Shown piece after piece: positions 8,497-48,278 of a DNA stretch of 64,000 bases. Both the position numbers and the translations under genes were made by a program. Under the pieces are notes generated by a model, which did no database searches, had not been told where the DNA came from, and saw only the letters and a list, made by a program, of their open reading frames with translations. The stretch lies in NCBI GenBank assembly GCA_964247055.1, contig OZ176052.1, positions 10,168,001 to 10,232,000 of the forward strand, written 5' to 3'. How positions within the stretch are numbered: the first letter of the stretch is position 1; each line of letters begins with the position of its first letter. The stretch is from Paragordius varius (taxonomy: Eukaryota; Animalia; Nematomorpha).

Positions 8497-11400
8497 ATGC
8501 CTTCAATTATTAAAGCTGGCTATTTGAAACGATTTGACAATGCAAAAACTGGAATAAAAGCTATCCTTGGATTTGGTGGAAAAGATTGGAAAGAAGAATA
8601 TTTTGTGCTATATGATGATAGTACACTGGCGTGGTTTAAAAAGCGAGATTCAAAAAAGCCTGAAGGCAGTGTATTTATTAAGGCTGTGGCAAATTTAATG
8701 GCTTTTGGCGAGTTCACCAAAAATGTTAACCATTTTTTTATAATTAGGTACCAAATAGACCGGATTTACCTTCCGGAGGATTATATCGTAATCTCATGGC
8801 ATTTGGCCAAGACAGGAAACATGTTATATTTGCTCTTGCAAACGATGAAAATGACATGAAGTTTATATTTTATACATCTCATTTATTACATTTATTCTAT
8901 AGCTCCTGGGTCAATGCGATTGTTAGCACAGTAATCTTTTTATTATTTGTTTTATTATAAAAATAAAAAATGGATTTAAATTTATTATTTTTAGTTACCT
9001 CCATTGCCTCAACCCCCTCCCCCAACTAGTGCGGCAGATGCCGGAAAAGCTCCGATTGATTCAAATAAACCAGGTAAGTTTTAATTTTAGGTAATAAAAA
9101 TATGTCATACATTTAATTATTGTATGTATAAATAGGCAAAATTTGTCATTTATTAGGGTATATTAAATTAAGTTACAGGTAAGAATGGCTATATTATTTA
9201 TTTATTGTAAAAGATCCTTTTTTTTAAAAGAAATACGGTTAGTGGTTAACATGTGAATGAGGACTTCCGTGGTGAAGCATTTTTACCAGAGTAGTTTGGC
9301 CATTTGATCTTTGATTGTTCGTTAGTGAAACTATAGGTTTAAGTCTTTTTAGAATTAAAAAGAAAGCACCTTTTTCTTTTTGCCGACATTGTAATGTTTT
9401 CTATATGTCCTAAAGCATTCAGATTCTGTTTGTTTCACAATGACCAATTTTATTGTTTGAAAAAATAAATATTGCGAGTTTGGTTTGCGGAAACAAATTT
9501 TGATTATATTAATTTCATTATTTTGATTTGTAAAATTTATTTTTCGCGGTGTCGGCTGAGATTATTGAGGAGCTGGAAATTATAAGTATGGTATACATAA
9601 CTTAGTTTCACATTAATTATACTTTGAGATATTGAATTTTCATTAATATTTTATGATTAAATATTTATTTTACATAGAAAGCTTTATCAATCTAAATTTT
9701 TTATTATTTATCTTGTTAATCTATTATTTCTATTATTTTATTCAAAATTTCTTTTTTCAAAAATCTTATGCATTAAAATGCTTCATTTTCCAACTATTTC
9801 TACCAACTTCACTGTATAAATTTATAGCTTTCTCTAACATTTGACTAATAGGTAATTGTTTCAAGTTTATATAGCAGTGTGTTTGTAATTTTTGATTTAG
9901 CTTCACCGACATATGGACAAGGTCAAATTAAATTTTATTTCTTCGTCTTATAAAGTGGATTTTCGGTCCCAAATTTTGATTGGTCCTCGGGATAACATTT
10001 TTTAAATTAATTTAATAGGCAGATACATCTCCTGACAGATAAATTAATGTATATATAAAACAATTTAGATTTACTATTGTTTCCTTAAAAATACTCGTAT
10101 ACAGTAGCTAAGGCATCGAACTTATTTACTATGTGGGTAACCAAGGTTCGATGCCTTAAACTGCATTTATCATAATCACTGTTAGTTCTGGAAACGAGTG
10201 TTAAAGCTTTTATTTTTTTACAAAGTTTGACGTCTTTACCCTTTATTGAAAAGCAAAAAAAGAGACTTTAAAATGTCTATATGTTATGCATTTTTCCTGA
10301 TGATGGCTGTGTGCGAAATTTGATACTTCTAATTACAAACCTTCGTTTTTACCTATAGAATTACAATATACACATTAATGTGTGTCAATTCACATTGTTT
10401 TTAGCCAATTGACCATACAGTAGCATATGACTAAAAAACAATAAATGGGTGTTAATTTTTTTACTATCTCACAACATTAACTTTAATTTAATTATGGACC
10501 AAATTTGTTTTTACCCATACGCTACTTTTGAACCAATTGACCAAAAATAATATACCATTTACAGTTCAAATTCACTCTTAACAATTCGAGTTCAACCTAA
10601 AATAAATTGTGTTTTTTAATATTTAAAATTACCTATATATTTTATATTTTAAAAAATGAAATTCCGTTTACAATAAAGTATGCTATAAGAATATATTTTT
10701 ATTAATGATGAGTTATATTAGCCCAAAAACACAGTTTATCTTTAGGGTGATGAATTGTTCAAGTGTGAATTTGAATTGTAAATGGTATAACATAAATAAG
10801 CTGTATCACTCCATAATGCCTACAATCTATATTATCATTATCTAGGTGATGAAAAATTGGCTGGTGGTGGTGTTGGCGGAGCAGCAGCTGCTGCTGGAGC
10901 TGGAGCCGCTATGGGCGCTGCAGCCGGAGCTGCCTCAGGGCCACAACAGCCTCCACCATATCAAGCAGGCGGACCTCAACAACAATCATATGGTGGTGGT
11001 CATCCTCCTCCCCCCACTCATGGTGGCGGTGGTCCTACTGTAGTCATTGTAGATAGAGACCGTGGTGGTGGAGGTGGCGGAGGAGGCGGAGGATATGGAA
11101 GTGGAGGCGGTGGTGGAGGAGGAGGAGGAATGTTTGGTGGTGGTCGAGGAGGTGGTCCAGGCCTTGGAACGGGTTTATTGGGTGGAGCTTTGCTTGGCTA
11201 CGGTTTGAGTAGTTTAACGCGTCCCTTTGGCGGTTATGGCATGGGTATGGGATGGGGTGGTGGAGGATATCCCATGATGGGTGGCATGGGGGGAATGGGA
11301 GGTATGGGTGGATATGGTATGGGAGGAATGGGCGGATACGGAATGGATCCTTACGGTGGAATGGGTATGGGTGGCATGGGAGGAATTCAAGACAATGACA

Positions 11401-12193
11401 CCACCAACATTGTTAACAATTACAATTATGGTGGTGCTGGTGATTCAGGTGAAATACTTGCTTCTTTTTAAAATGATTTTACTTTTAATTTATTAATCTT
11501 ATTACTATGGTTATGTTGTAACCAGGGATGTATCTGACTGATTTAACTGTGAAGGTTGTTATAATAATGTCTGAAAAATTTAATCGTATGTTAGTTGCGA
11601 TAAAAATGTAAAATAATGGTTTAAAAATTAAGTAAAACTAGTCAGATCTTTATATTTTATCCAAATTTTTCTATTGTCATAAATTGGAAACACTACTAAA
11701 AGTATTTTGCATTTTTTGTATTAATTGCTACATTTCGTGACCGGTCTAACCCTTATTTTTTAACCGACCGACCAAAAAGAAGCATCTTAATTACACCACC
11801 TATTTTGTTGTTACTAATGCTTTAGGTGGACTCATGGGTGGTGATTATGGAAGTGGTGCCGGTTTTGGTGGTGGTGGCGCTGTTGGTGGGGGAAGCGATT
11901 TCTTTACCGACAACACGTACAATTCGGGCATTGGTGATTATGGAGGCGGTATGGATGATTACTCTGGTGGTGGGGGTCTCTTTGGTGGCGGAGACTCTGG
12001 CGGAGGTCTTTTTGGAGGTGGCGGCGGGGGCGGAAGTGATTTCTTTGGTGGAGGCGGTGATTTTGGCGGAGGGGGTGGCGGTCTTTTTGGTGGAGGAGGA
12101 GGTGGTGGAGATTTCTTTGGTGGTGGCGGAGGAGACTTTGGTGGAGGAGGTGGTTTCGGCGGTGGAGATTTTGGGGGCGGTGGAGACTTCTAA
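8497..12193 (+). CDS. Evectin/PLEKHB-like PH-domain protein with Pro-rich linker and long Gly/Met/Tyr-rich tail
   Basis: Exons 8497-8724, 8748-8860, 8903-8930, 8995-9073, 9901-9921, 10846-11448, 11826-12193. PH motif IIKAGYLKR...WKEEYFVLYDDSTLAWF...SWVNAI, then PPPY, GLGTGLLGGALLGYGL and terminal GGGDF repeats. Confidence 0.82.
10102..10163. mobile_element. Mini inverted-repeat element (~60 bp)
   Basis: 13-bp perfect IR TAAGGCATCGAAC/GTTCGATGCCTTA with outer CAGT/ACTG, inside a PH-gene intron. Confidence 0.45.
10551..10789. mobile_element. MITE family B, copy 1 (TIR TATACCATTTACAGTTCAAATTCAC)
   Basis: Inverted ends at 10551-10600 and 10740-10789; a homologous copy lies at 63432-63724. Confidence 0.75.
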
Positions 12194-14159
12194 AAGAACA
12201 AAAAATGGCACTCTCTTATACCTGGCACTGTGTCTCTTACTTGTCACATGCTTTATATATAAGTAGTATAGTATATAATGTGGATTATTAGTGCTTAATA
12301 TATTCCCCTAATTTATTATATTACATATATGTATCCTGTTCTATTAAATATGATTAAAATTGATTTTAGTTGAAGCTATTATTTAATTAACCACCCATAC
12401 AAAGTCATATACATGATTAGTAACGACAATATATTTTTTGTATAATTTGTGATTAATGCCCATATTTATTTATCAAATATTTGCATGCCTTAAATATTTT
12501 TAATACATTATATATTTATTGAAACACCTCGATATTTTTAATTATAATATACTTAGTTATATTTATTGAATTATGTAACATAGCTCTATGCAAAAGTGAT
12601 GTGCATAAATATAATTATTTTAAAATACTCTTGTTTTGTGCAATTGCTTTTTAATTGCTTAATTTTAGGAATATTTATATTCTATGCTTAACTAAGAATC
12701 TAGTCGAACCACCTATAATAAATGTGATTCCTAAATTTTGTATTTTATTTAAATATGGTTTTAAAAATTACATATTAATGTTAAGATAACTGGGATATGA
12801 AATTTACTTTTATATATATTGTGTTTTCTATATAAAGTTTTAATATACCAGGGAACCAAAAAATCCCGATGAAATATATTTTTTATATAACAATGTATCA
12901 GATTTATCATAGGGCTTTTGGTTTTAGCCCTTACGATTGATTTAATAAAGTTAATTACACTTTTGTGGTAACTGAATATCGAAAAATGGCGAAATATGCG
13001 CACATTTTGTTTAATAATTTTTTTTTGGAAAGCTTCATTCCAAAAACATCGCTAAAATATATTATAAACCACATATAAAGCTAAATCATTTTTTGATCTA
13101 TACGAGTTCCTCATTTAGAATAAACCCAAAAGACTGCTGAGATTGGGGGGATGAAAAAATTAATATATGCTAAATTTTGATATCAAAAATGGTTTTTGCG
13201 AAAAAAATGGATATTTTGCTTAAAATTTTAAATTTATAACAATATTAATTGAGCCTACTTCATACAATTTTGTTATGATGTTTGTTAGCTTTAAGATATA
13301 ATAAAAACACTTTATTATATAATTCGATTTTGCTGACCATTTCTATTATTTAAGAATTTTAGAGGTTACTTAAAGAAACCATCTATGTACAACATATTTT
13401 TTATTTAAAGTGACGAATTTTTTAAACAAATTCTGAGGTGATATAAATGTTGAATATCATCGAATTATATAAATATCTAAAAGAATTTATACCGTTTTCA
13501 TCATGCGTCAAAGTATGAAGTAAGCGTCAGCAAAATTTTGCTATATATATATACATATATATATTAATTAGCAAAAAATTTATTTTTTGGAAAAAAACTT
13601 GATGTCAGAATTTAGCATATACGCTTACCACAAAATCTCGGGAAACGTTTATTTTAAGAGGTATAACCCATTTAAGAAGGAAAAAATTGAAACTTTCAGA
13701 GCCTACACTATGCACACATATCATTTTGTCTAGTTTTTACCTTCAGATTTATCCGTAATAAATATACTATGTTTTAATGTTTCTAATATGTTTAGATATA
13801 TCGGTGAATTAATGTTATAAACGTGCAAACATTTTCACTAAAATTTCTTTAATATTTTTTATTATTAGTTTTAAACAGCTCTGGTGTTACAAATTCCTAT
13901 TTAAATTGAAAAACTAGATTGAATGTGTTGTACTTAAGTGTTAAAAAAAGGGCGCAAGTTTTGTCATTTTTTCATATAGGGAAGTTATCACAAAAGTGTA
14001 AATAATAATAATCGTACAAAACCAAAAGCACTATTAATCAATATTTATATTAACAGGACATATTTATGAACACTTTGTATATATAAAGATTTAATAAATT
14101 TAATGATAACTACAAAAATTTACTAAAACAAAATTTTAAGGAAAAACAAGTTTTTTTAA

Positions 14160-14825: not shown

Positions 14826-15800
14826 ATCAAGAAAAGGGTGTAGCAGACCCACGTCGCCACTGTCCACAAAAGACGTCCCTTGCTGCCCTTCCATACACCA
14901 GTCAATGGTGGTTCAGTGACAGCCGTCTAGTTGCGTCGGGGGTCGGGTTGACTTCTAGGGATATAATGATAAGTTTATATAAAGATATGTATGAAATAAA
15001 ATGAAGATATATTTGGCATTTACAGGTAAATCCAATTGACTATATCCTATATATTTATACTAATGTTTAATAGATTTAATATTCTTTAAAATATAACGTA
15101 TGAAAATTCTAGCTTAATTCAACCGAGTGCATATTTATTATACTGTAGTATTTATCTTGTTTAATACGATTTATAAACCAATATTTAACTTTTACTAGTG
15201 GTATGTATTTCCGTTGTTAATAAAAAAGTATGAATTTTGGGCTTAGAATATAATAACCATATTTAAAAATGTAAATTAAAAATGGCGGCCAAGTAGTTTA
15301 ATATGCAACTTTAAAACTAAAATTAGATATTTTATTTACTTATATAGTTTATATAAAAATAGAAGCATATAATTAAATTGAAACCGTTTCTTTCAGAATT
15401 TTAATGAATATATCTACTAAATATTGTCTGGGTATCTAGCTACCCCAATTCAAATCGAAGTGTTTAAATATTATATTTTTATTTAAAAATCTCTCAATTT
15501 TGGCGCTTTCAATATCGGCAATTTTAACTCAGTCCAAAAACGTGAGAATTTTTACTACATACATTAAAATTAGATATTATCTTTTTTGGGTTTTTTATAT
15601 ATTTTGGAGTGCACACAAAAAATATCTATGATAGATAAATATTTCAAGATTTTTGGTAGGCTTACCAGTCATTCACCTTTAAATTCAATAAAAGAATTAT
15701 ATAAAAAATTGATTAAATACATAGCTCTTTTTATATCATAAAGCTCCTTCGCAAGGGTTTCTTTAGTGACGCTTGAAATTTAACATTAGTTTACATTTGT

Positions 15801-16028
15801 ATGATTGGTCAACATGATCCTCCTATAATAAAAAAATTTTCTAAACCCTTTTCGAAATGTTTGCAACAAGTTAATTAATAATTATTAATAGGCTATTATC
15901 TATGGTAGATGTATTATAAATTGTAAAGAAGAAATTAAAAAGGATTCGTGTGAAAAAGAATTTAAAAGCCTATTAGAGTGTATAAAGTTTATTATTTTAT
16001 TTATATTAATAGAAATCATCAAAAATAA
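15801..16028 (+). CDS. NDUFAF8: NDUFAF8 (C17orf89)-like small twin-Cys mitochondrial complex I assembly factor, ~59 aa
   Basis: Exons 15801-15869, 15892-15986, 16013-16028 (introns 22 and 26 nt) give MIGQHDPPIIKKFSKPFSKCLQQAIIYGRCIINCKEEIKKDSCEKEFKSLLECIRNHQK*, matching the family pattern C..A..YG.C....KD.C..EF..L..C. Missed by the ORF track. Confidence 0.8.
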
Positions 16029-16031
16029 TAA

Positions 16032-18303
16032 ATGGCCGAATTCGTTCAGCTTAATTTGGAACAAAGTCTTGATGAAATAGAACAGTTAAGAAGTTCTCTT
16101 ATTTTTACGACGAATGAATTGAAAATTATCATACAGACGCCGTGATTTTGAATATAAATTGAGACGTAAACAAAAAAGCTTAAAAGATTACATTGATTAT
16201 ATTGAATACGAAAAAAACATATTAGATTTAATAAGATATCGACATAATGATAAAATCAAAAACAGTAAACGTCGTAATACTCAACATAAAGAGAATTTAT
16301 TTGAACGCCAAATCACTAATAGAATTTTCAAACTTTATCGCGAATTACTTAAGCGGTATCCTCAATCTCTCGACACATGGACCTCATACGTAACTTTTGC
16401 AAAGTTTCGAGTATCTCACCTTGATGCTATGGAAAAAGTTTGTCGCAAACGATTAAATAAATCTGAGCATAGAAACTCGCAACGTTTACATGGTTTCGAA
16501 CGCAAGCTTGACCGAGTTATTCGATTAATTAGTCGAGCAGAAGAACGCGTTACAACCATTTATGCAAATATGATTGGACATCACGGGACAGTCTCATGGG
16601 TTTGGATCGATGCAGTATGGTGGCAATATAAAAGAGATGTGACATCCATAGACAAAGTTCGTACAATGATGCGAAAAGCACTGGAAGGATTTAAGGAATC
16701 CGAGGCAATTAATATCAAGCCAAACAATTGTAATTATTACAGTGATGAAATAAGTGATAGGGCTAAGTTATGGCTTGCATTTGTGACTATTGAATTACAT
16801 TATTATGGTAAGATGGTGTTGAGAAATAAAATTATAAACAACAGAAAGCAAAAAGAAGCGGATCAGCTTTCGAACCCTATAATAGACACGGATTTACCGG
16901 AAAATGACCACGCTCATGATGCTATCCAGAACACACCAATATTGCCTAGTCAACAAAATATTGATATGAATGATGAATCCTTAGCTACTAATTTTAAACT
17001 TTTGTGTGTTATTATAAAGCATGCAATTACATCTGAAATCCCACAAAATCCTTACTTTATATTGCAAATTTTGAAGATTGTTATGAAGCAAAAAGGTCGG
17101 AAGCAGTTGCTTGATTTTCTAACTGAAACTTTGCATAATCATCAAAATGAGTTTTCTTATACATTTGCCACTATATTATATTATTTTGAGGTGCCCGAAG
17201 TTTTATCAAAGCAAAAGATAACATCTTCGAGATTAAATTATTTATTGGAACTTATTGTTGAGGCCTTACACTCAAAAATATCACTTATCTCTATCCGTGA
17301 TGTTCAGTTTATACTCAATTTTATAAGCAAAAAATATCAACCAAACTCATTTGTTGTTATGGAAATTGATTTACATTTTATTTTACAAATTATACAGTCG
17401 CTAAACAATATTTTGGAGAAATTATGCAGTATGAAAATTGAAAAAAAGATGGCTAAAAATATATGGCTAGATATTCTTGTTTACATTCTCGAGATTTATA
17501 ATTCTTGTGGCGATGTTGCATTTCATCAGATTTATTTGGAAATATTAAATAAATTAACTCATTCTTTATATCCAAAAACTGCAAGATTTTGGGCTATGCG
17601 ACTTCAAACTTTCCTTGCACCTACAAATCCTGATCTCGTAACTTTCCATAAAGTATTCCAAGACGCTTTGGCTAAAGTTAAAGAAAAAAATTGCTTTATA
17701 ATATGGGATACTCTTTTATCATTTTATGAAAACATGAATATGCACAAGGAATACGATTCCACCATTGATAAGGCGTTCAAAACTTTAATTAACATTGACG
17801 TTTTGTGTGAAATTAAGGATAAATATGCAAAATTCCTGATTAACAGAATTAATTCTTTTGGGTCTATAGAATGCTCTTCCAACTCCGAATTCCAGCAAAC
17901 TATAGCAAATATGGTAAAAATAGGGGAATGTCAACCAACATTAGCTAAAACATACATTTGTATAATTGAATTTTTGCAAAATTATTTGACAACACTCACA
18001 CAACATGACAAAACAGGCAAAATTAATAATTATGATCAATCTGAGATTAATTTAGCCATAGATAAACTCATAAATTTTGCCCTTATAAGGCACGGTAAAG
18101 AAGAACCCTGCCTTTGGATACTTTATATAAAACGTCAGAAACAACTTTTCTCCCTTAAACTTTCAAGCCAATCTTCGTTTGGGATTGAAAAAAATGTTTC
18201 ATCTTTATCCACCATTTATGCGCAAGCTATTAAAACTTTACGACCGGAAAAAATGGATGATTTTATTACTTTGTATACTAATGTCACTATGTCTGTCAAT
18301 TAA
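16032..18303 (+). CDS. UTP6: U3 snoRNA-associated protein 6 (HAT repeats); intronless, with a frame break near codon 37
   Basis: MAEFVQLNLEQSLDEIEQL..IFTTNELK (frame 0) then DFEYKLRRK..KDYIDYIEYEKNILDLIRYR (+1 frame), LLKRYPQSLDTWTSYVTF, WVWIDAVWW, and a further ~714-codon open frame. Confidence 0.88.
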
Positions 18304-18602: not shown

Positions 18603-21600
18603 ATGATGAATAAAATTATTGGACGAGTCTACAGAAATCTTATATCATCTACTGTTTGGTATTCACTTGCAATTTTTATTCTAACCATCATTCCCCATAT
18701 TCCATCTCAATGTCCCAAAGGTAATGCAACCCAATCCATTGTTTAATACTCTTTAATTCTACAATCGCCTTTTAGATATTATTGGTGTAAAAGAACTGGT
18801 TAAATATGCTTGTGATTGTCAAAATGGTGAAGAGTTACAGGTGAGAACTCGACAAGGTGCAGTATATACCATTAATACATCATTCAATACCAGCAATCAA
18901 GAATTTTCAGTTGAGTTTGGTAGGAGAAGGGCCAGTTTCAACGTTTATTCTCAATATCTTAATGGACCTAAAGCGGTTCGGGACAGAGTGTACACTATAT
19001 TCCCTCACACAGATGTTATGCTACTTAAGGAATTGAGTAATGCGTACGAAACGATTCGCATCAATTCAGATCTCACTGCCAATTTTTACATAAATCAGGG
19101 GCCTGTGGATGTGACCTTTTTCACCTTTGATGTGGCAACTAAAGCTTTGCTCAGTAAATGTATTGATACACCCAATTCAGATATTGTAGAAAAGTATATA
19201 ATATATATTATATTTTAATCTTTATTTCATGCGTTGATATTCACCAATATAGGATCGGTTTATCTGTACTGTGACCCAAAAAATAGCATTTGTTCTAAAA
19301 TAATTATTTTTTCATTTTTTAATTAAGTATTATGACTAGGTTTTTAAATTAACAAACGTAATGGCAACATTTATCTAATTATATTTCGATACATTTTAGA
19401 TTAATGTATATATCCATTTAATATGTAAATGCGCAGATCCTGGTTTGCTTTTAAATTGTTCTCTGGGTTTAGACAAACTCACCCTAAAAAGTTGCAAAAT
19501 TTTTCATATATTACTATTATCATACTTAAAAATATTTGAAATTTTTTTGCTACAATTACAACCATTAAAAAGATTCATTTCACCATAATAATTTTTTTAA
19601 ATAAACATGCGTCGATTTTTCTCAATTTTATATCAACAAGATTAATCCTATATTTAATTACCATTATTATGGTAGGTATTTAATCCATCAGGCCGAAATC
19701 TACCCTATGGAAATTAAATATAACTAATTTATTCGCCCTTTTTATATGTTTAGCTATTTGTTTCAATTCTTTCATATTCTTACCAAATTCTTTCTTAATA
19801 CAAGCCCTCCATTATAACATAGATCATAAATTTTTTCTTTTTCCTTCATCTTTTCCGACAAATCTTTTCATTAATCCATAATTTAAAGGATTAACTGCAA
19901 AGCTAATGCCATATTAATACAATATTATTTTTTAGTTCCTCGATAACTTTGCGTCATGGAAAATATGTATATTGCAAATCACGAAATTCTCAATCTATAT
20001 GCGGTAGATGTTCGATGCCGACTAGAAATGCCCGATCTGGTATATAAATATATTATTTTATTTTCGTGTCATATAACTAATTTTTTATGGGTTTATTGCT
20101 TTTAAAATTTTAAAATATAATTTACTACTCTGTTAATATTAATATTTTGTCATTAATAAAATAAAATAATTGTAAAGCCGTCACGAATCTACCCAATAGG
20201 TACTTACGAAATAGACACCCTTTTGATTTTCATTGGGTTTTTGAATCATTGACTCTTTTTTGTGAACGGGTCCAGCATAGAGATTTTCCGCCTCTATAAT
20301 CTTAATTAATTTATGCATGAAACATTTTTGTTAATTTAGATATCCGTTTAAATTTATTAGGCATTTTTAAATTTTATATAATTCAATTTTGTCATGCGTC
20401 TTTTATTGACATACAGAGCAGTTCCTTTTACGTGCAATAAAAATCAACAATACTCCCAAAAGAGGTGTTTTTGACACCAAGGTATGTTTTTTACAGTAAT
20501 AATAGAAAGAAAATAGTCGGCTCCTTCAGTGTTTGATTTCAGCTTTAATCATTACATTGTGCTGCTAAGAGTCGGATATTGCCGAGAATCAAAGTCTATA
20601 CCAAGTTAAATTTAATTATTTTTTTGTTTTGATATCAATTTTGTTTATATAAATTTATAAATTGGTAAAATTAAGTGAAAACACTAGTTGTCTGTGAAAT
20701 AATATAATTTGGTTCGTTTTTGTTATAAAATTAAACATTCTTGTGCGTACAGTTAGACCTCCAAATGCCAATGTAGATGGAAGTCAAGGAGTATCTGAGA
20801 CTCCTAGAGAAACCGAAACCTCGAAATTAAATGATTATGGTTTAAGTTTGCCGAGAAATAGTGTATGTGGAATCGATCGGAACTTTCGCGAACGCCAAGC
20901 CAGGACATTTGGTAAAAAACCTTCTTGGAGAATTTTGGGGGGCACAGCTGCGCAACCCAACTCATGGCTTTGGGTGGCCGCCTTGTACCATGATGTAGAT
21001 CAATTCTTTTGTGGGGGAACCATTTTATCTCCTGGCATTATTATCACTGCCGCACATTGTTTCATAAATTTTAGGTGAGTGAGATGAATTGTGATTAACA
21101 TTATCTTATATAATACTTAAAAAATATTTTTTTAAAACACCTGTCCCAGGGGTATTTTACAATTTGTCAGATAACAATCTATGCATATTTTTGGGGCGAT
21201 TTAATTTTGAGTAAAAAATACAAAAGTTTAACCCGTTACCACTCATTTCTGGTTATAAAATTTTCTTTCGCTCTGATTAATTTAATCTTTTTTACCCTTT
21301 TCCTAAATTATGTTTTTAAAGCGTCATAAAACACCATCGTGCCCTTTTGTAATTTATTTGGTGGTTTAGTTTTTTATTTGTTAGAGTGAGTTTATGGGCA
21401 CTCTAATCACATTTTTTAATTAGATAACATTTTTTATAGCAGAAGACTAGCAATTTTATGCTATCAATTATTTTTTATTCATATTTCCAAACATTGCTAA
21501 ATTACATGTGCAAAATGTCTTTTGTATAGGACAAAACGGGAGATTGATCGATTACGCGTCCGCGTTGGAAAGTATAATATAACTATTAAGGAGAATACGC

Positions 21601-23563
21601 AACAAAACCGAAGCATAAGCCAACTTATAATACACGAAGAATTCAATCGCGATCCTACAAGTACAAAAAATATAATAGTGATTTTTCATTGAAAATATAT
21701 TTTTCCTATATTCGAACTCTTAAAGGTTTTCTACCATTTATTTAAAAAAAAAATTGCCCGACCCGCTCCTCTCCCAAAAAACGGATAAAAATACAAAATT
21801 TATTATAATATTAAAAAAATCATAATCAATGAGATCCTTTTCTACTATTGTTGAAATATTTTTTTATACCGGGGACAAATCTTGATGCACCTGATATCTT
21901 CATTAACATTCAATTCGTTTCTAGTTTTATTTTTTAATAGATTTCTCCATATTTTTTGATCCCCCTAGATTTTTTAGGCCACCCTTAAGGGGCGTTGCCC
22001 TTCTTTTGAAAACCACTAAATGTTATTTTTATAAAATTTGCCTAAAATAATGTGCAGGGTGTTTTTGTCTATGTTTTCCATATAATATACGGTGAGATAC
22101 CAAATTTAAAAGAGTCTTCAGAATTTCGCCAATTTTCAGTGCATGTGTGATTGCGATCGAATTAATTTTTAAACATCAAATAATTAATTAGTAGCATTCC
22201 CTTTATCTTTTATTTTAACGCATTTAATTGATTCCCACAATTTAAGTGGGTTAATCAGAAAATCTTAAAACTTTTTTCCGATATTTTATTTATGTAACTA
22301 ATTTTGAAAGATGTAAATAAAAACTTATGGATAACTCATTCATAAATCTTGAAACAACATAGAGTGCCTTTTCCCTTAAATTTTGTTCGTTAAGCTTTCT
22401 AAGCAAAATGTTTATAATACAGTCGTGAAACTTATTAAATACCTCCAATACAAATTTTTAAATCAGTTACAATTTCATGGTTATCAAATAAAATCAGTAA
22501 TTATATTACTTTATAGATGAATACAAAAATGATATAGCCCTTGTTGTATTGCGAAAACCCTTAAAATTTAATAAAAATACCATTAATGTATGCCTCAACG
22601 ATGGATTTTACCCTATAAATGAATCACCGCAACCAGATTGTATTGTAACGGGATGGGGAAATATGGGTAATATATTTCTTTTTTTAACGATATATATTAC
22701 CTGATTTTTACCCATTAGAACGAAATGAAAAAAGTACCGTTTTACGACAATTGGACGTTAATCTAATTTCTCGAGAAGTTTGCAATGCTAAAAAATCAAT
22801 GAATAACAAAGTGATAGATGGGATGTTTTGTGCAGGATCCACAGAGGGAAAGGATGCTTGCGAGGTAAATTTCATGCAATGCAAAGTGGTACTAATCTAG
22901 TTAATAGAATTATTAAATATTGATATTGAAAGCCACATTAATTAAAAGTTTGGACCCTTTTTTGGAAAAATTAATATACATCTTGGAGATTTATGTTAAG
23001 ACAAAGTAATACCTGTTAATACCATCAACTACGAAATGTGGATAAATATCTAGTCTAATATATTTGGAAAAATGAATAATATAGTTTGTATATCAGGGCT
23101 TCGAATTGGTTCGAAAAAAGTAGAACCAGAACCAGTAGGGTTAGAACTAGAACCGGCCTGGCTTTTAAGAATTTAAAAATGGAACAGAATTATGGTTCCT
23201 AAAATTTCGAAACTGGAACCGTGGTTCCTAAAAATTAGAACCGAAACTGGGTTGGTTTTACCCCTAAAAAGTTCCTGCTTTAATTTCAGGAACCGGGTTC
23301 CGGTTCGAAACACTGGTTTATATGCGTTATATATTGCAGTTTTTCACATAAATATAATCAAGGGTGATAGTGGCGGACCCTTGCAATGCTTCAACAGGCA
23401 AGAGAAAAGATGGTATTTAACAGGGATTGTTAGTTGGGGCATAGGTTGTGGTCTACCAAACAAATATGGAGTTTATACTAATGTCAAAGAATTTTTACCT
23501 TGGATTAATGCCAAAATACGGGAATTACAACTCAATTCTTCTTTTTTATCGTATCAATTTTAA
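18603..23563 (+). CDS. Trypsin-like (S1A) serine protease with N-terminal hydrophobic segment and ~300-aa stem
   Basis: Ten phase-consistent exons: 18603-18720, 18776-19193, 19936-20039, 20417-20481, 20517-20604, 20753-21074, ~21530-21661, ~22518-22666, ~22720-22864, 23362-23563. Activation site R|ILGG, TAAHC, NDIAL, KDACE|GDSGGP, GIVSWG.GC, GVYTNV. Linkage of the first five exons to the protease is less certain than the catalytic domain. Confidence 0.9.
23094..23315. mobile_element. hAT-like MITE in the last protease intron
   Basis: Imperfect TIR CAGGGCTTCGAATTGG / CCGGTTCGAAACACTG; 8-bp flanks TTGTATAT/GTTTATAT (6/8 identical); many internal (A/G)GAACC motifs. Confidence 0.72.
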
Positions 23564-31142: not shown

Positions 31143-34100
31143 TTACCATCTAACCCGTTCTTTATATTCAGTTTTAACGCTGAGTCGTTTCATAGATTCA
31201 TACCCAAGTATAATAAAAAAGGAATAAACAATGGATTGACTACAGCGGGCCGAAAGGCCCTTCTTAAATATGTTTAATCCTTCTTCATTCCATAACGTTT
31301 TAATGGTTGCTGGGTATGACATTCTACTAACCTATGAAACAAGGAATATAACATTTTAGTTTTACAGTAAAAAATAAAATTATAGGCACAAAGTGTAAAA
31401 ACATATTTTCTTAAAAGACCGCTATACTTTTTAAAACTTTTTTTTTGAATATAAAAGTCATCGTTTAAAACAGCACAAAGTATGAAATAGAGATGATCAA
31501 TTATATATTTAACCATTGTAATTGTATAGTTTAGATATGAAAAAAATTGTTTAAAAATATAAGGTGACTTTTGAAAGAAAATATTTATTTCATTAATTTT
31601 TTACGTTTTGTCTGTATAATTTCAATTTTTACGGTATTTACATTATTTTATAAATGTAAATTATTCTGAATACAATGGGTAATATTGATATTATTGAAAT
31701 TCCCAGTATATAAATTATATATACATTGAATTGGAGGCTGGAGAGCTTTTATTAAATACTTTATCCAGTCTTATAAGGCGTTTTTCCAGTTAATCAACTA
31801 TCTACATTAGGACACAACGTTTTTATTGACTGAAAAAATGTTTTGTTGGAAATTATTCAATAACTGTTTAGATTAAGAAGAATAAATGGATGATGGATAA
31901 TTTTAGGACTCCATATTCGGAGTTTTGTATCCACGAAGTAGTTTCCTCCATAAATTACGATCTTTACATTGTTCTGTGGAAAGGCTACGTTGATTCAAGC
32001 CCATTTTTATATTATCATTATAAGAAAAGAGTGGTCGTCCCTTTCTTCTATTGCCATCAACATTAATGTTATCAACAGTTTTTAAAGGATGGGTGGCGTC
32101 TCTTCTCTGAGTATGACCGTAGAGACGCAATCTGTTTGTTGAATTATATAATCGATTTTATCGTTTTCTTTAATGAAAATTGGTATTTCTGGTGTACGAA
32201 AGCAGCTTTTGAGGATTCGATTCTCACTGGTTAGGAGTTTTGTTTGATTTGTTTTGTTTAATGCCCAGGTTTCAGAACCATAGGTAAGAGCAGGTCTTAT
32301 TCCTGCCTTGTAAAGATACCATTTATTACGATTGTTAACATTTTTGTTTTGGAAAACATATTTAATTGATTATATTTTATCCAACCTTGTTGTATTCTTA
32401 TTTTGATAGCCTTTTGTGGGCTTCCCTGAGATGATATGACATCTCCTAGGTATACGAAAGAGTCAACCAATTCGATGTCATGTCCATCAATGTTAAGTAG
32501 CTTTGGTCGATTAAAATTTTTATTGCTTGGGTCTAAGCAATTTAAGCATTTAAAATTTATTACATTTGTTAACTTGTCTTTTATTTTAGAGCACTTTTTG
32601 TGTACCCACAATTGACATGATATGCATTTAATGGAATTTGAACGTACTTCCTTACTGCAAATGGAACAGGGGTATCTGGGTGTTTCACTTTCACCCGTTA
32701 TCATTATTTTTGTTTTTGTGGCGTTTATGATCATCCCATATTGTTCAAGGCATTTCTTCCACTTGGAAAATGTATTTACCAATTGATCCCATGATCGTGT
32801 CGTTATCACGAGGTCGTCGGCGAATAACATTTTCCAAGGGCATTCAGTTCTTATGTCTTGCGTTGCCGCATCCATTATAGTAATAAAAAGGAGTGGACTT
32901 AGGACTGAACCCTGATGTAGTCCAGCGTTTGTTGGGAAATTGTTTGTATTGCCAATATTGGTTTTAACGTTGGTTGTTGTATTTTTATAGAGTAGTAATA
33001 AAATTTGTATAGTATGTTCTTCTATTCCCTTTTTACGTAGTGCCCATTGAATTGTGGAGCGTGGTATTTGGTCAAACGCACGTTCCAGATCTACAAAGAC
33101 ATGGTATAGCTTTTGTTTCTTTTCCAGATATTTTTCTTGTAAGCGTCTTAGGATGAACAAGGGATCAATTGTGCTACTGTTTGGACAAAATGCAAACTGA
33201 TTCGAATCTAAGTTTATAAGTTTTCTCAGCTTGTTTTCTAAAATATTTTCGAATATTTTCAGTGTGTCCAGAAGTTTTAAAGGTCGGTAGGACGATGTTT
33301 TTAAACGATCGCCTTTATTTTTATAAATGGGGATTATTATGCTGTTCTTCCAATCGTTGGAAGTTTGGTTTGTAATTATTATTTGGTTAAAGAGTTTTGT
33401 CAGATACTCTGCAGTGTTTTTGATGGGTCGAATGAGGTCGACTGAAAGGCTGCTTGGACCTGGAGCTTTGTTACTTTTTAATTTATTGATTGCAGTTGTG
33501 ACTTCATCTATGGTGATTTCTTGTATGGGACCAGCTACTGGTGAAACTATGCTAATTTGTTTGGTCGGGTTTACTTGGTTGAGTTGTTTTTCTAAGTTCG
33601 TTTTCCAAATTTCTTTGACTTTCAAGGGATTCGTTATTATATTATCATTATCATTTTTAATACATTTTATGGTTTTAACATCTTTATTACTATTGTTAAG
33701 GTTTTTGAGTCTTTTAAAAATCGTTTGGTTTTTAAAGTTTTTTTCTAAATTTTCAGCGATTTTAACGGATTTTTCATTCATAGCGTGTCGAATGGCTTTT
33801 TGGACCTCTCGTTTTTTGTCATCATAAACTTTTTTATCATCATTATTTTTCGAGCTTTTCCACTTTTTATATGCTTCGCCTTTTTCACGCAACAATGGTT
33901 TTATTTCATTTTTCCACCATCAGCTTTTCCGTTGCCTCATTGGTTTAGTAAAGCCACAATGTATTTTAGCAGATGTTAGAATTGTGCGTTTGAAATTTTT
34001 CCATAGAGTTTCAACATTGTTTTGTTCGGGAATATGTAACTCTGTGTTTTTGGTATATTCGGTTAATAATTTTGAATCCTTTAACTTTGCTTTATTTATT

Positions 34101-37100
34101 TTTTGGGGTTGGAATGCGGTCTTACGGCTTTTCTCAATGATTAGAAATGCTGTTATTAGCTTGTGTTGATAGGAGGGTTGATAGTAAGTTTTGATGTTTG
34201 TTAAATGTTTCCTAATGTTTTTGGGAATCAATATGAAGTCTATCATAGATGAGTGATCACCAGAATTATAAGTTATGTGCTGGTTGCTTTTTTTCTTAAA
34301 ATGGGTATTTGCGACTATGAGTTGATTTGCAATGCAAAAGTCTAGCAAACTCTCGCCCATCTTATCGAGGGTTCCGACGCCATTTCCACCATGCACGCCA
34401 TGGTATTCATTACTGTCATTATTAATATGGCAATTAAAATCACCACCAACAAAGGTTTGTTCGCTAGAAGAAGTTTTGTTCATCAAATCATAGAGGGCTT
34501 CCCAATATTCGTTTTTTGATGCTTCGCTTAGACCAGATTGTGGTGCGTAAGTTGAAACTATATTTATTACATTATCATTCATCAATATTTTTATTTGAAT
34601 CATTCTTGGATTATGTCTTATTACATCAAATATGTTATCAAGATAGATGTTTTTAATGAAAATCGCAACACCACCTTGTCCCTTGTCATTTCCTTTATAG
34701 AATAATGTACAATCGTTTAAGTTTTTTAATCCCTCTCCTTTCATTCTGGCCTCTTGGATGCAACATATATCTATATTGTTATGGCTAAGAGTGTTTGTTA
34801 CCATTAATATTTTGTTAACTAGGGTACCCACATTCCATGTGGCAAATTTCAGAACTGTTTTATTATTATTACTAACGGTATTATTTATTTTCAGTTATTT
34901 TGGTAATTTTTATTATTTAAAGTTTATATCAAAAAATATAGGGTATAAAAGTGTAAATAGGAAATATTATCAAAATAATTATTATAAGTTGAATTATTAT
35001 TGTTATTTGAGATGTTGATAAGGTTTTAGTGTTCTTTCATATTCATATTATTATACTTCATGGTTTATTGAGGCAATTTTTTACGCATCACATGCCCTTG
35101 TGTACAACTAATGATTTTACAGATCATTAGAAAACTGCCTTTGCCGTTAGCGCATTTTCATGCCCCAGCCAACACCACGGGGAAGTGGCAATAGGACTTT
35201 GTTGGCCTAAGAAGAATAAATGCAAAAAAATTAAAAGGCATTTTCTCAAAAAAACAATACTTTTCAACCTTGAGTTTTACATGTCTCGAATTAAATATTT
35301 GATTTTCATAATTTACACTTCTATGCCCTATTTTGCAAATCAAAATAGTGTATGTTTTCTAACTCATGATTTTAAAATTTGTTTTATAAAAAAAATTGTC
35401 TAAGGTTGGTCAATTAGTGTCTATTTTTAGTATATATGAGTTTGTATAGATGACTTAAACTTATAAAATATATTATTACAAAAATATTTTTACATATATA
35501 CAATTTTTTACAAATTTACCTGTACACGGGCCCTTATGAGATCCAGAGGATTTGTGCAAAAAGCAGCAGTAATACCAGCAAAAGGTGCAGAAATGCATTG
35601 TAATAAGAGTAAGGGGACACCGTGTGAAGCGATTGAAGCTAAATAATCTAAAAAAAGATAAATACAAGTAAAATTTAAAGATTCATCCTTGATATTATTT
35701 AAATAATCTAAACTATATGATTACATTTTGAAATATAAACTATCTATTTACACCTCTATACTAACTTCGAAACCCAAAAGCTATATTTAAAAAGTAGTTA
35801 TGTTTTACTTCTAATATTTTACTGAAAGATAAAAAATCAGGCGTTTGTATTTTCACAAGCTCAATTTTTGCCTAAAACAGTATATAAAGCGCCGTTAAAT
35901 ACAGTATGAGTAAGTATACATTGCTAGAAAGTTATTAATTATCGAATAGTAAATACAACAAAGGGCAATATTATTGGCTAATAATAGTAAAAGTGAAAAA
36001 AATAACTATAACCCAATAATACTTCCCTTTTTTCTATTTACTATTTGGCAATAATTAATAACTTTCTAGCAATGTATACTTACTCATAACGCAATTAAAA
36101 TGTCAATTAATCAATTTAGTAAAAAACAGATGCTTATAAAATAGAACAAAATTACCAAATTTAAACAAAACGTTGATAATTACCATTTTGTTATGCTTTT
36201 TTGGTTAATATTTATTCAACATACTTATAGGGTAGCATTTGATATAGAATTTCGTAACTTTTAGATATAATTTTAAGGATTGCATTATAATAAAGATTAT
36301 TAGATTATTTAATAGTATATTCCAGTATTTTAGCTAATTAAAATAATAGATAAATATATCTAGCCAAAAATTTAGGAGAAGAGTTCAATATTGCTTTTCA
36401 AAAATATATCATCCGATTAAATCGGTTTTTTTCAAGTTTTTTTCCTCAATGACTTTTACCAGCATATCAAAATTAGATGCACACAATATAATAATATACA
36501 AGTACCTCTGGAAAAATATTTTTATTTAAAAATTAATCGGAGGATTTGTTATCATGGAACATGATTTACAACAATATAAAATCTATTATAATTCTTTATC
36601 AAAAAATAATGAAATATACTGCTGTAAGTTTGATAGGCTGACCACCAAATAGCAGAATTCGGAACGTAGCAAAGAAGGGAAGCAAAATATCCGCGATAAA
36701 ATCCAAACAAACCATCTTTCCTGTAAGAATTAAAGAAGAGAGCTAAATATATATCTCATAACATACTTGTAAATAGTAGACACAATAGCTTGAGTAAGAC
36801 CTTTTCGGTTAAATTCATATTTGTTTCCTAATTCCAAAGAATCTAAATGGTATATTTTTCCGAGGGGAACTTTGGATTTGGTTGATGAACCACCATAAAC
36901 CATCATGTGCTGCGATACTATGTCACAGGGTACTAAAATCGTTTGATTAACTAAAGATGCACATCCTCCTGCTATAAATGCTCTGTACTTTGTGTCTTGG
37001 ATGTTTGAATAGTTTTTTAAAATATGACGGGTTGTTTCATAAGACGTAATGTAAAAAAGGCCTGAGAGTAATTGAATAGAACTAATGATAAACCCCTTAT

Positions 37101-48138: not shown

Positions 48139-48278
48139 ATCGGCCAATCAAGGCCAACGAAAAATTGCCTACATCTCGTAATAGAGTATGTGGCGGGGTA
48201 TTGGTTATAGTTTTCAACTAGCAATAACCGCACCTCGGTAAAACATCATTGGTTACGGTATCGCCACTGCGCAAAGTT
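48139..48278 (-). ncRNA. U4: U4 spliceosomal snRNA
   Basis: Reads AACTTTGCGCAGTGGCGATACCGTAACCAATGATGTTTTACCGAGGTGCGGTTATTGCTAGTTGAAAACT...CCAATACCCCGCC...GGCAATTTTTCG + 3' hairpin. U4/U6 stem II and stem I sequences and the k-turn stem match metazoan U4. Confidence 0.95.

Follow-up and report, generated by a model that had tools for sequence, protein, structure and literature searches.

The 64,000-nucleotide (nt) stretch of the Paragordius varius genome analyzed here (hereafter the window) contains, on its forward strand, a small spliced open reading frame (ORF) that ends three bases before the start codon of UTP6. The small ORF (15801-16028) has 59 codons distributed over three exons, separated by micro-introns of 22 and 26 nt, and, as read directly from the sequence, specifies a product with a twin-CX9C motif. 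Direct reading confirmed what an initial annotation of this DNA had described at the junction, namely the small-ORF coordinates, its CAA AAA TAA end and the 3-nt gap to the UTP6 ATG. A further TAA, sharing its frame with the small ORF and UTP6 alike, makes up the whole gap (16029-16031), and ATG GCC GAA follows from 16032. Positions 16026-16034 read TAA TAA ATG in a single frame, and a double stop, a possible polyadenylation signal and the UTP6 start overlap within these nine bases. The two same-strand ORFs leave no room for a terminator or a promoter between them, the spacer being 3 nt and the UTP6 start being verified by homology.

The small twin-CX9C gene

Exon 1 (15801-15869) comprises the ATG and 22 further codons, specifies a basic N-terminus (four Lys, one Asp) and contains the first Cys codon at 15858. 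Micro-intron 1 (15870-15891; 22 nt, GT-AG, 9% guanine plus cytosine, GC) would introduce an in-frame TAA if retained. Exon 2 (15892-15986; 95 nt) encodes the end of helix 1, Tyr-Gly-Arg-Cys, a loop and the whole of the second C-x9-C. Micro-intron 2 (15987-16012; 26 nt, GT-AG with the AG at 16011-16012, 8% GC) carries the same signature as intron 1, GTTWAT...TTAATAG, and its retention would extend the small ORF to a TAG at 16078-16080, overlapping UTP6 by 49 nt. Exon 3 (16013-16028; 16 nt) completes a Lys codon with its first base and adds Asn-His-Gln-Lys before the TAA stop at 16026-16028. The four Cys codons of the motif lie at 15858, 15910, 15949 and 15979, and a fifth, extra Cys is encoded at 15922. 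The spacing is exact in both arms (15858 + 30 + 22 = 15910; 15949 + 30 = 15979); in the first it is so only after removal of the 22-nt intron, hence the motif is absent from the unspliced DNA. Helix 2 reads Cys-x-Lys-Glu-Phe-x-x-Leu-x-x-Cys, and the 19 residues ahead of the first Cys include four Lys, one His and one Asp. The start context is weak, with T at position -3.

The dependence of the CX9C spacing on splicing, the shared signature of the two introns and their low GC content are the grounds on which we regard the small ORF, with high confidence, as a real spliced twin-CX9C gene. The signature GTTWAT...TAATAG occurs four times in the window versus 1.2 times expected from shuffles, and two of the four occurrences are the introns of the small gene, 117 nt apart. 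GC content is 8-9% in these introns versus 24-29% in exons 1 and 2. The two other matches to the signature lie at 14054 (reverse strand; 24 nt) and 54423 (forward strand; 23 nt). The opposite view is that the small ORF does not work as a gene: it would have arisen by chance, be a copy in decay, or act only as an upstream regulatory ORF of UTP6, and the functional NDUFAF8 would lie somewhere else. This view would agree with the lack of a significant sequence match for either exon searched, and with a UTP6 gene in the relative Gordionus that has no adjoining counterpart. It also draws on the frequency of the motif: when one GT-AG intron of 20-28 nt is allowed, stop-free twin-CX9C patterns arise in dinucleotide shuffles at about 0.28 per 64 kb, both strands included, and the pattern alone is not rare in shuffled sequence of the size of the window. 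However, the probability that such a pattern falls within about 100 nt of a particular start codon, and on its strand, is roughly 2e-4, and the features of the small ORF taken together with its position and strand put chance at about 1e-4 or less. These features are the correctly placed ATG, the 19-residue basic lead-in, the exact intron-dependent spacing, the matched signatures of the two introns, and two residues in keeping with published NDUFAF8, namely the Tyr three residues before the second Cys and the Phe of helix 2. On this balance we hold it very unlikely that the small ORF does not work as a gene.

The product is, plausibly, the complex I helper NDUFAF8, a label that rests on features of the protein. 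NDUFAF8 (C17orf89) is a complex I assembly factor that stabilizes NDUFAF5; it has 74 residues, a twin CX9C on two helices and a basic lead-in of about 19 residues without acidic residues, which acts as a weak matrix-targeting signal (PMC7042492, PMC10174193). Tyr32 of the human protein, three residues ahead of Cys35, is part of the MIA40 recognition signal (PMC10174193), and Phe55 in helix 2 is invariant (PMC7042492, PMC10174193). Like NDUFAF8, the hairworm protein is small and has a twin CX9C built on four Cys and a Tyr three residues before the second Cys. Its lead-in of 19 residues is basic apart from the one Asp, and a Phe lies in helix 2 four residues after the third Cys, a place that may correspond to human Phe55. 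Presumably, some half of the 22 core positions agree with the human protein, and the six published aromatic positions of NDUFAF8 fit the human sequence used for this comparison, which is support at the level of features and not a test. Unlike NDUFAF8, the hairworm protein has 59 residues instead of 74, one acidic residue (Asp) in its lead-in and a fifth Cys; moreover, its exons gave no statistically significant match to known NDUFAF8 proteins.

The searches behind this last point were made with each exon separately, and are a weak test of a match to NDUFAF8. Exon by exon, no match to the small gene was found in Pfam at E values up to 10, nor in the PDB, and exon 2 read through intron 2 (contiguous and stop-free; region 1-40) gave no homologue candidate sharing three words. 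The look-alikes in the ESM Atlas were generic CHCH/Cx9C clusters, the best with a score of 0.87, which is a lead only. The NDUFAF8-like label given by the initial annotation agrees at the level of features with the published protein, but receives no support from Pfam, PDB or homologue searches of the separate exons.

UTP6, its frame break and the Gordionus gene

UTP6 is read in two frames. Frame A (16032-16136) encodes residues 1-35, colinear with residues 1-35 of human and Gordionus UTP6, and frame B (16135-18303) begins Arg-Arg-Arg-Asp-Phe-Glu-Tyr-Lys-Leu and continues without further introns to the stop at 18301-18303. Using phmmer, frame B aligned to residues 36-118 and 397-482 of human UTP6 (E 5.6e-10) and to yeast Utp6 chains (E about 1e-9), and, over its full length, to the Gordionus protein named UTP6 homolog by NCBI (E 1.3e-43, 33% identity over residues 1-706). 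The UTP6 call of the initial annotation was borne out by these matches to human, yeast and Gordionus UTP6, and the protein can be regarded as firmly identified at the level of sequence similarity. The Pfam family U3_assoc_6 (PF08640) is split between the frames, its positions 1-27 being found in frame A and 38-76 in frame B; the halves score 20.1 and 19.8 bits, each under the family cut-off of 24.7. Among 1.84 billion representative proteins the sole close relative was that of Gordionus sp. m RMFG-2023, the protein collections contained none from P. varius itself, and a word-based homologue search with the large UTP6 exon gave nothing, its word filter being too coarse for the fast-evolving UTP6. 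The N-terminus was set at 16032 by homology to the human and Gordionus proteins: residues 1-35 of frame A align Met to Met with human residues 1-35, an alignment that is weak alone (E 0.65), and over the first 34 residues the identity with the start of Gordionus UTP6 is 62%. These alignments identify the ATG at 16032 as the genuine start codon of UTP6.

The frame break lies at 16134-16137, where frame A ends with CAG (16134-16136) and frame B starts with AGA (16135-16137), and an alignment of the DNA with that of Gordionus has a 2-nt gap exactly at this CAGA, the P. varius gene being 2 nt short. Frame A runs on into a TGA at 16143-16145. The position 16145, given by the initial annotation as the end of the segment, does coincide with this TGA, but it marks the UTP6 frame break and not an ordinary exon end.

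Three repairs fit, and on sequence grounds the break can be explained by an assembly error or recent indel, by a 52-nt intron or by a 22-nt intron. The candidate 52-nt GT-AG intron (16085-16136) would join frames A and B, removing residues 19-35 and re-forming Gln18 as CAA across the junction. In Gordionus the UTP6 isoforms X1 and X2 (759 and 742 amino acids) differ by the in-frame removal of a 51-nt GT-AG segment (10035-10085 of the locus), within the first coding stretch, which takes part of U3_assoc_6 and falls in the same region as the 52-nt candidate. The candidate 22-nt GT-AG micro-intron (16142-16163) would restore the frame and delete the conserved Asp-Phe-Glu-Tyr-Lys-Leu, and is the least likely repair. 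An exon of UTP6 ending at the TGA (16143-16145) with the 22-nt intron was rejected because this conserved block would be lost. A +1 ribosomal frameshift at CCG-TGA-T was likewise rejected, since the three frame-B Arg codons before the stop match three Arg of Gordionus; by the same match, the shift lies at or before 16137.

In Gordionus, UTP6 is one uninterrupted ORF (10001-12280 of locus L001, taken from OX940786.2). No CX9C ORF was found within 10 kb of it on either strand, the exon peptides of the small gene gave only noise against the UTP6 locus, and of the ORF fragments of the window UTP6 alone matched, with no other shared gene. The comparison covers one relative, the only one found. As far as the two sequences tell, the pairing of the small gene with UTP6 would be lineage-specific, either gained in the P. 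varius lineage or lost in Gordionus. The initial annotation had envisaged a coupling of complex I assembly with the small-subunit (SSU) processome, to be sought as synteny in relatives; the absence of the pairing within 10 kb of Gordionus UTP6 argues against a deep or old functional link between the two.

Possible routes of expression at the junction

The geometry of the junction forces both genes, if expressed, onto a shared or overlapping transcript, since the gap is 3 nt and the long ORFs of the window are few and widely spaced. GC content across the window is 25-38%, and exons for Ig, PH, trypsin and mitochondrial-carrier domains are scattered across the 64 kb. At 32297-34831 (reverse strand) lie ORFs of LINE (long interspersed nuclear element) type, encoding an endonuclease (Exo_endo_phos) and then a reverse transcriptase with a PHD/C1-like zinc finger at its end. 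The window, its long ORFs being sparse and an element of this kind being present, is not compact, therefore general crowding does not explain the 3-nt spacer. A ciliate-type genetic code or the compact genome of a protist, to which introns of 22 nt might point, was rejected in view of the animal domains and the LINE-type element.

The best explanation, which we hold tentatively and with a little less than even confidence, is a single bicistronic mRNA from which UTP6 is translated by termination-reinitiation; we infer both the single transcript and the mode of UTP6 translation. In this model both genes would be transcribed as a unit driven from upstream of 15801, and removal of the two micro-introns would give the mature bicistronic mRNA. 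Ribosomes would translate the small ORF and halt at the TAA at 16026-16028, and a fraction of them would resume at the UTP6 AUG 3 nt downstream. No intron follows the small-ORF stop, unless an optional intron at the UTP6 frame break is real, and without an intron past the first stop junction-dependent mRNA decay would not be triggered. When only a few bases separate two ORFs, reinitiation is promoted (PMC11291117). Leaky scanning past the weak first AUG may contribute. Four out-of-frame ATGs are present in the exons of the small ORF, at 15814, 15857, 15902 and 15909, each opening 4-9 codons when read by eye, and in green algae a single AUG placed back into ORF 1 reduced the expression of ORF 2 to background (PMC11291117). 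Taken together, these make pure leaky scanning unlikely.

Several points weigh against such a bicistronic mRNA. A first ORF of 59 codons is long for efficient reinitiation; a UGGGA motif of the calicivirus type was not visible by eye in the approximately 90 nt before the restart; and RNA structure at the junction did not exceed that of shuffled sequences (z = -0.99). The absence of a CX9C partner beside Gordionus UTP6 means that the pair is not an old conserved unit, and bicistronic expression is here a prediction from the DNA sequence.

In addition, two hexamers at the locus would permit separate overlapping mRNAs. The AATAAA at 16027-16032, formed by TAA-TAA-A(TG), is a possible polyadenylation signal, and a TATAAA is found at 15981, inside exon 2 of the small gene. 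Transcription of UTP6 could begin within the small gene, one candidate site lying near 16012, about 30 nt past the TATAAA, and the small mRNA could be cleaved about 15-30 nt past the AATAAA, inside the first UTP6 codons. That Gordionus UTP6 is annotated alone, with no upstream partner, fits this arrangement, as UTP6 then needs none. However, both hexamers are common in DNA of 27% GC, AATAAA occurring 2.75 times per kb on this strand, and a promoter within the coding exon of another gene, 3 nt away, is unexpected where neighbours are kilobases apart. We consider two overlapping mRNAs rather unlikely.

The acceptor AG of micro-intron 2 (16011-16012) sits 19 nt before the UTP6 ATG and would leave a 19-nt leader past the junction, which opens a further route based on a shared promoter and alternative splicing. 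A donor in the leader, such as the GT at 15789, could be joined to the acceptor at 16012, skipping the small ORF and giving a monocistronic UTP6 mRNA, while full splicing of the micro-introns would give the mRNA of the small protein. By eye, GT contexts upstream of the first ATG are GTTTAC at 15789 and GTGACG at 15766, but nothing marks either donor as used, and we consider this route unlikely.

The same good acceptor at 16012 could serve a spliced leader (SL) trans-splicing operon as in nematodes, the sister group of hairworms, which use an SL system; the leader would be added at 16013 and the upstream mRNA polyadenylated nearby. But this acceptor, the only one near the UTP6 ATG, precedes the stop of the small ORF, and the two products would be mutually exclusive for each pre-mRNA. 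Moreover, the 3-nt spacer is unlike the approximately 100-nt spacers of nematode SL2 operons. An Rfam scan of the window gave U4 only and no SL RNA family, which says little on the whole genome, and full-text literature searches gave no paper joining hairworms or Nematomorpha with trans-splicing or a spliced leader. We give this route very little credence.

Relation to known systems and setting of the pair

Dicistronic mRNAs whose first ORF encodes a small protein are established in humans, among them MIURF-MIEF1, PYURF-PIGY, ASDURF-ASNSD1 and STREMI-SLC35A4, and the upstream protein is mitochondrial in at least the MIEF1 and SLC35A4 cases (PMC13303939). The hairworm pair resembles them in that a small ORF of mitochondrial type precedes, in the same orientation, a larger housekeeping ORF unrelated to it, both of conserved types. 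It differs in its spacer of only 3 nt, in a shared mRNA that is here predicted and in its absence from Gordionus, and neither NDUFAF8 nor UTP6 occurs in the text of that paper (PMC13303939). In bicistronic loci of green algae, which are read by leaky scanning (PMC11291117), the ORFs lie close together or even overlap and the start of ORF 1 is weak, as in the hairworm pair with its short spacer and T at -3, but the four out-of-frame ATGs inside the hairworm ORF 1 set it apart from them.

Like two viral gene pairs, influenza B M1/BM2 and calicivirus VP1/VP2, the hairworm pair has its stop and restart codons within a few bases. Termination-reinitiation operates at such stop-start junctions in both viruses. 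Unlike them, the hairworm pair lacks a visible 18S-complementary motif of the UGGGA type, and belongs to a predicted cellular mRNA with a first ORF of 59 codons. Nematode operons are of the SL2 type or of the SL1 type, the latter without an intercistronic spacer. As in these operons of the sister phylum, the two hairworm genes are of unrelated function and are packed together on the same strand; the differences are that the only nearby acceptor of the hairworm pair lies inside the upstream ORF and that no SL RNA was found in the window.

If one mRNA makes both proteins, the few animal dicistronic genes known to encode two conserved proteins would be joined by another pair, from a phylum not yet among them, and the 3-nt spacer would point to translational coupling over leaky scanning. 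The pair could then also help in studying the origin of polycistronic expression in the sister lineage of nematodes. A broader reading, possible but in our view doubtful, is that in hairworms small proteins, many of them mitochondrial, are as a rule encoded by the first ORF of bicistronic mRNAs with stop-start reinitiation, and that the gain and loss of these units continues, as suggested by a pair NDUFAF8-UTP6 that is present here and absent in Gordionus. Were this so, hairworms would possess an equivalent of nematode operons that is based on coupled translation. Small genes with introns of 22-26 nt placed in the leader of another gene are invisible to standard gene finders, and reported losses of such genes in hairworm genomes may therefore partly be annotation artefacts.

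Two other features of the window concern splicing. A full-length gene for the U4 spliceosomal small nuclear RNA lies at 48143-48278 on the reverse strand (Rfam, 107 bits, E 2e-23). At 20743-23563, on the forward strand, a trypsin-family protease domain has its beginning in one ORF and its end in another, 2.1 kb apart, so that ordinary long introns coexist with micro-introns in the window.

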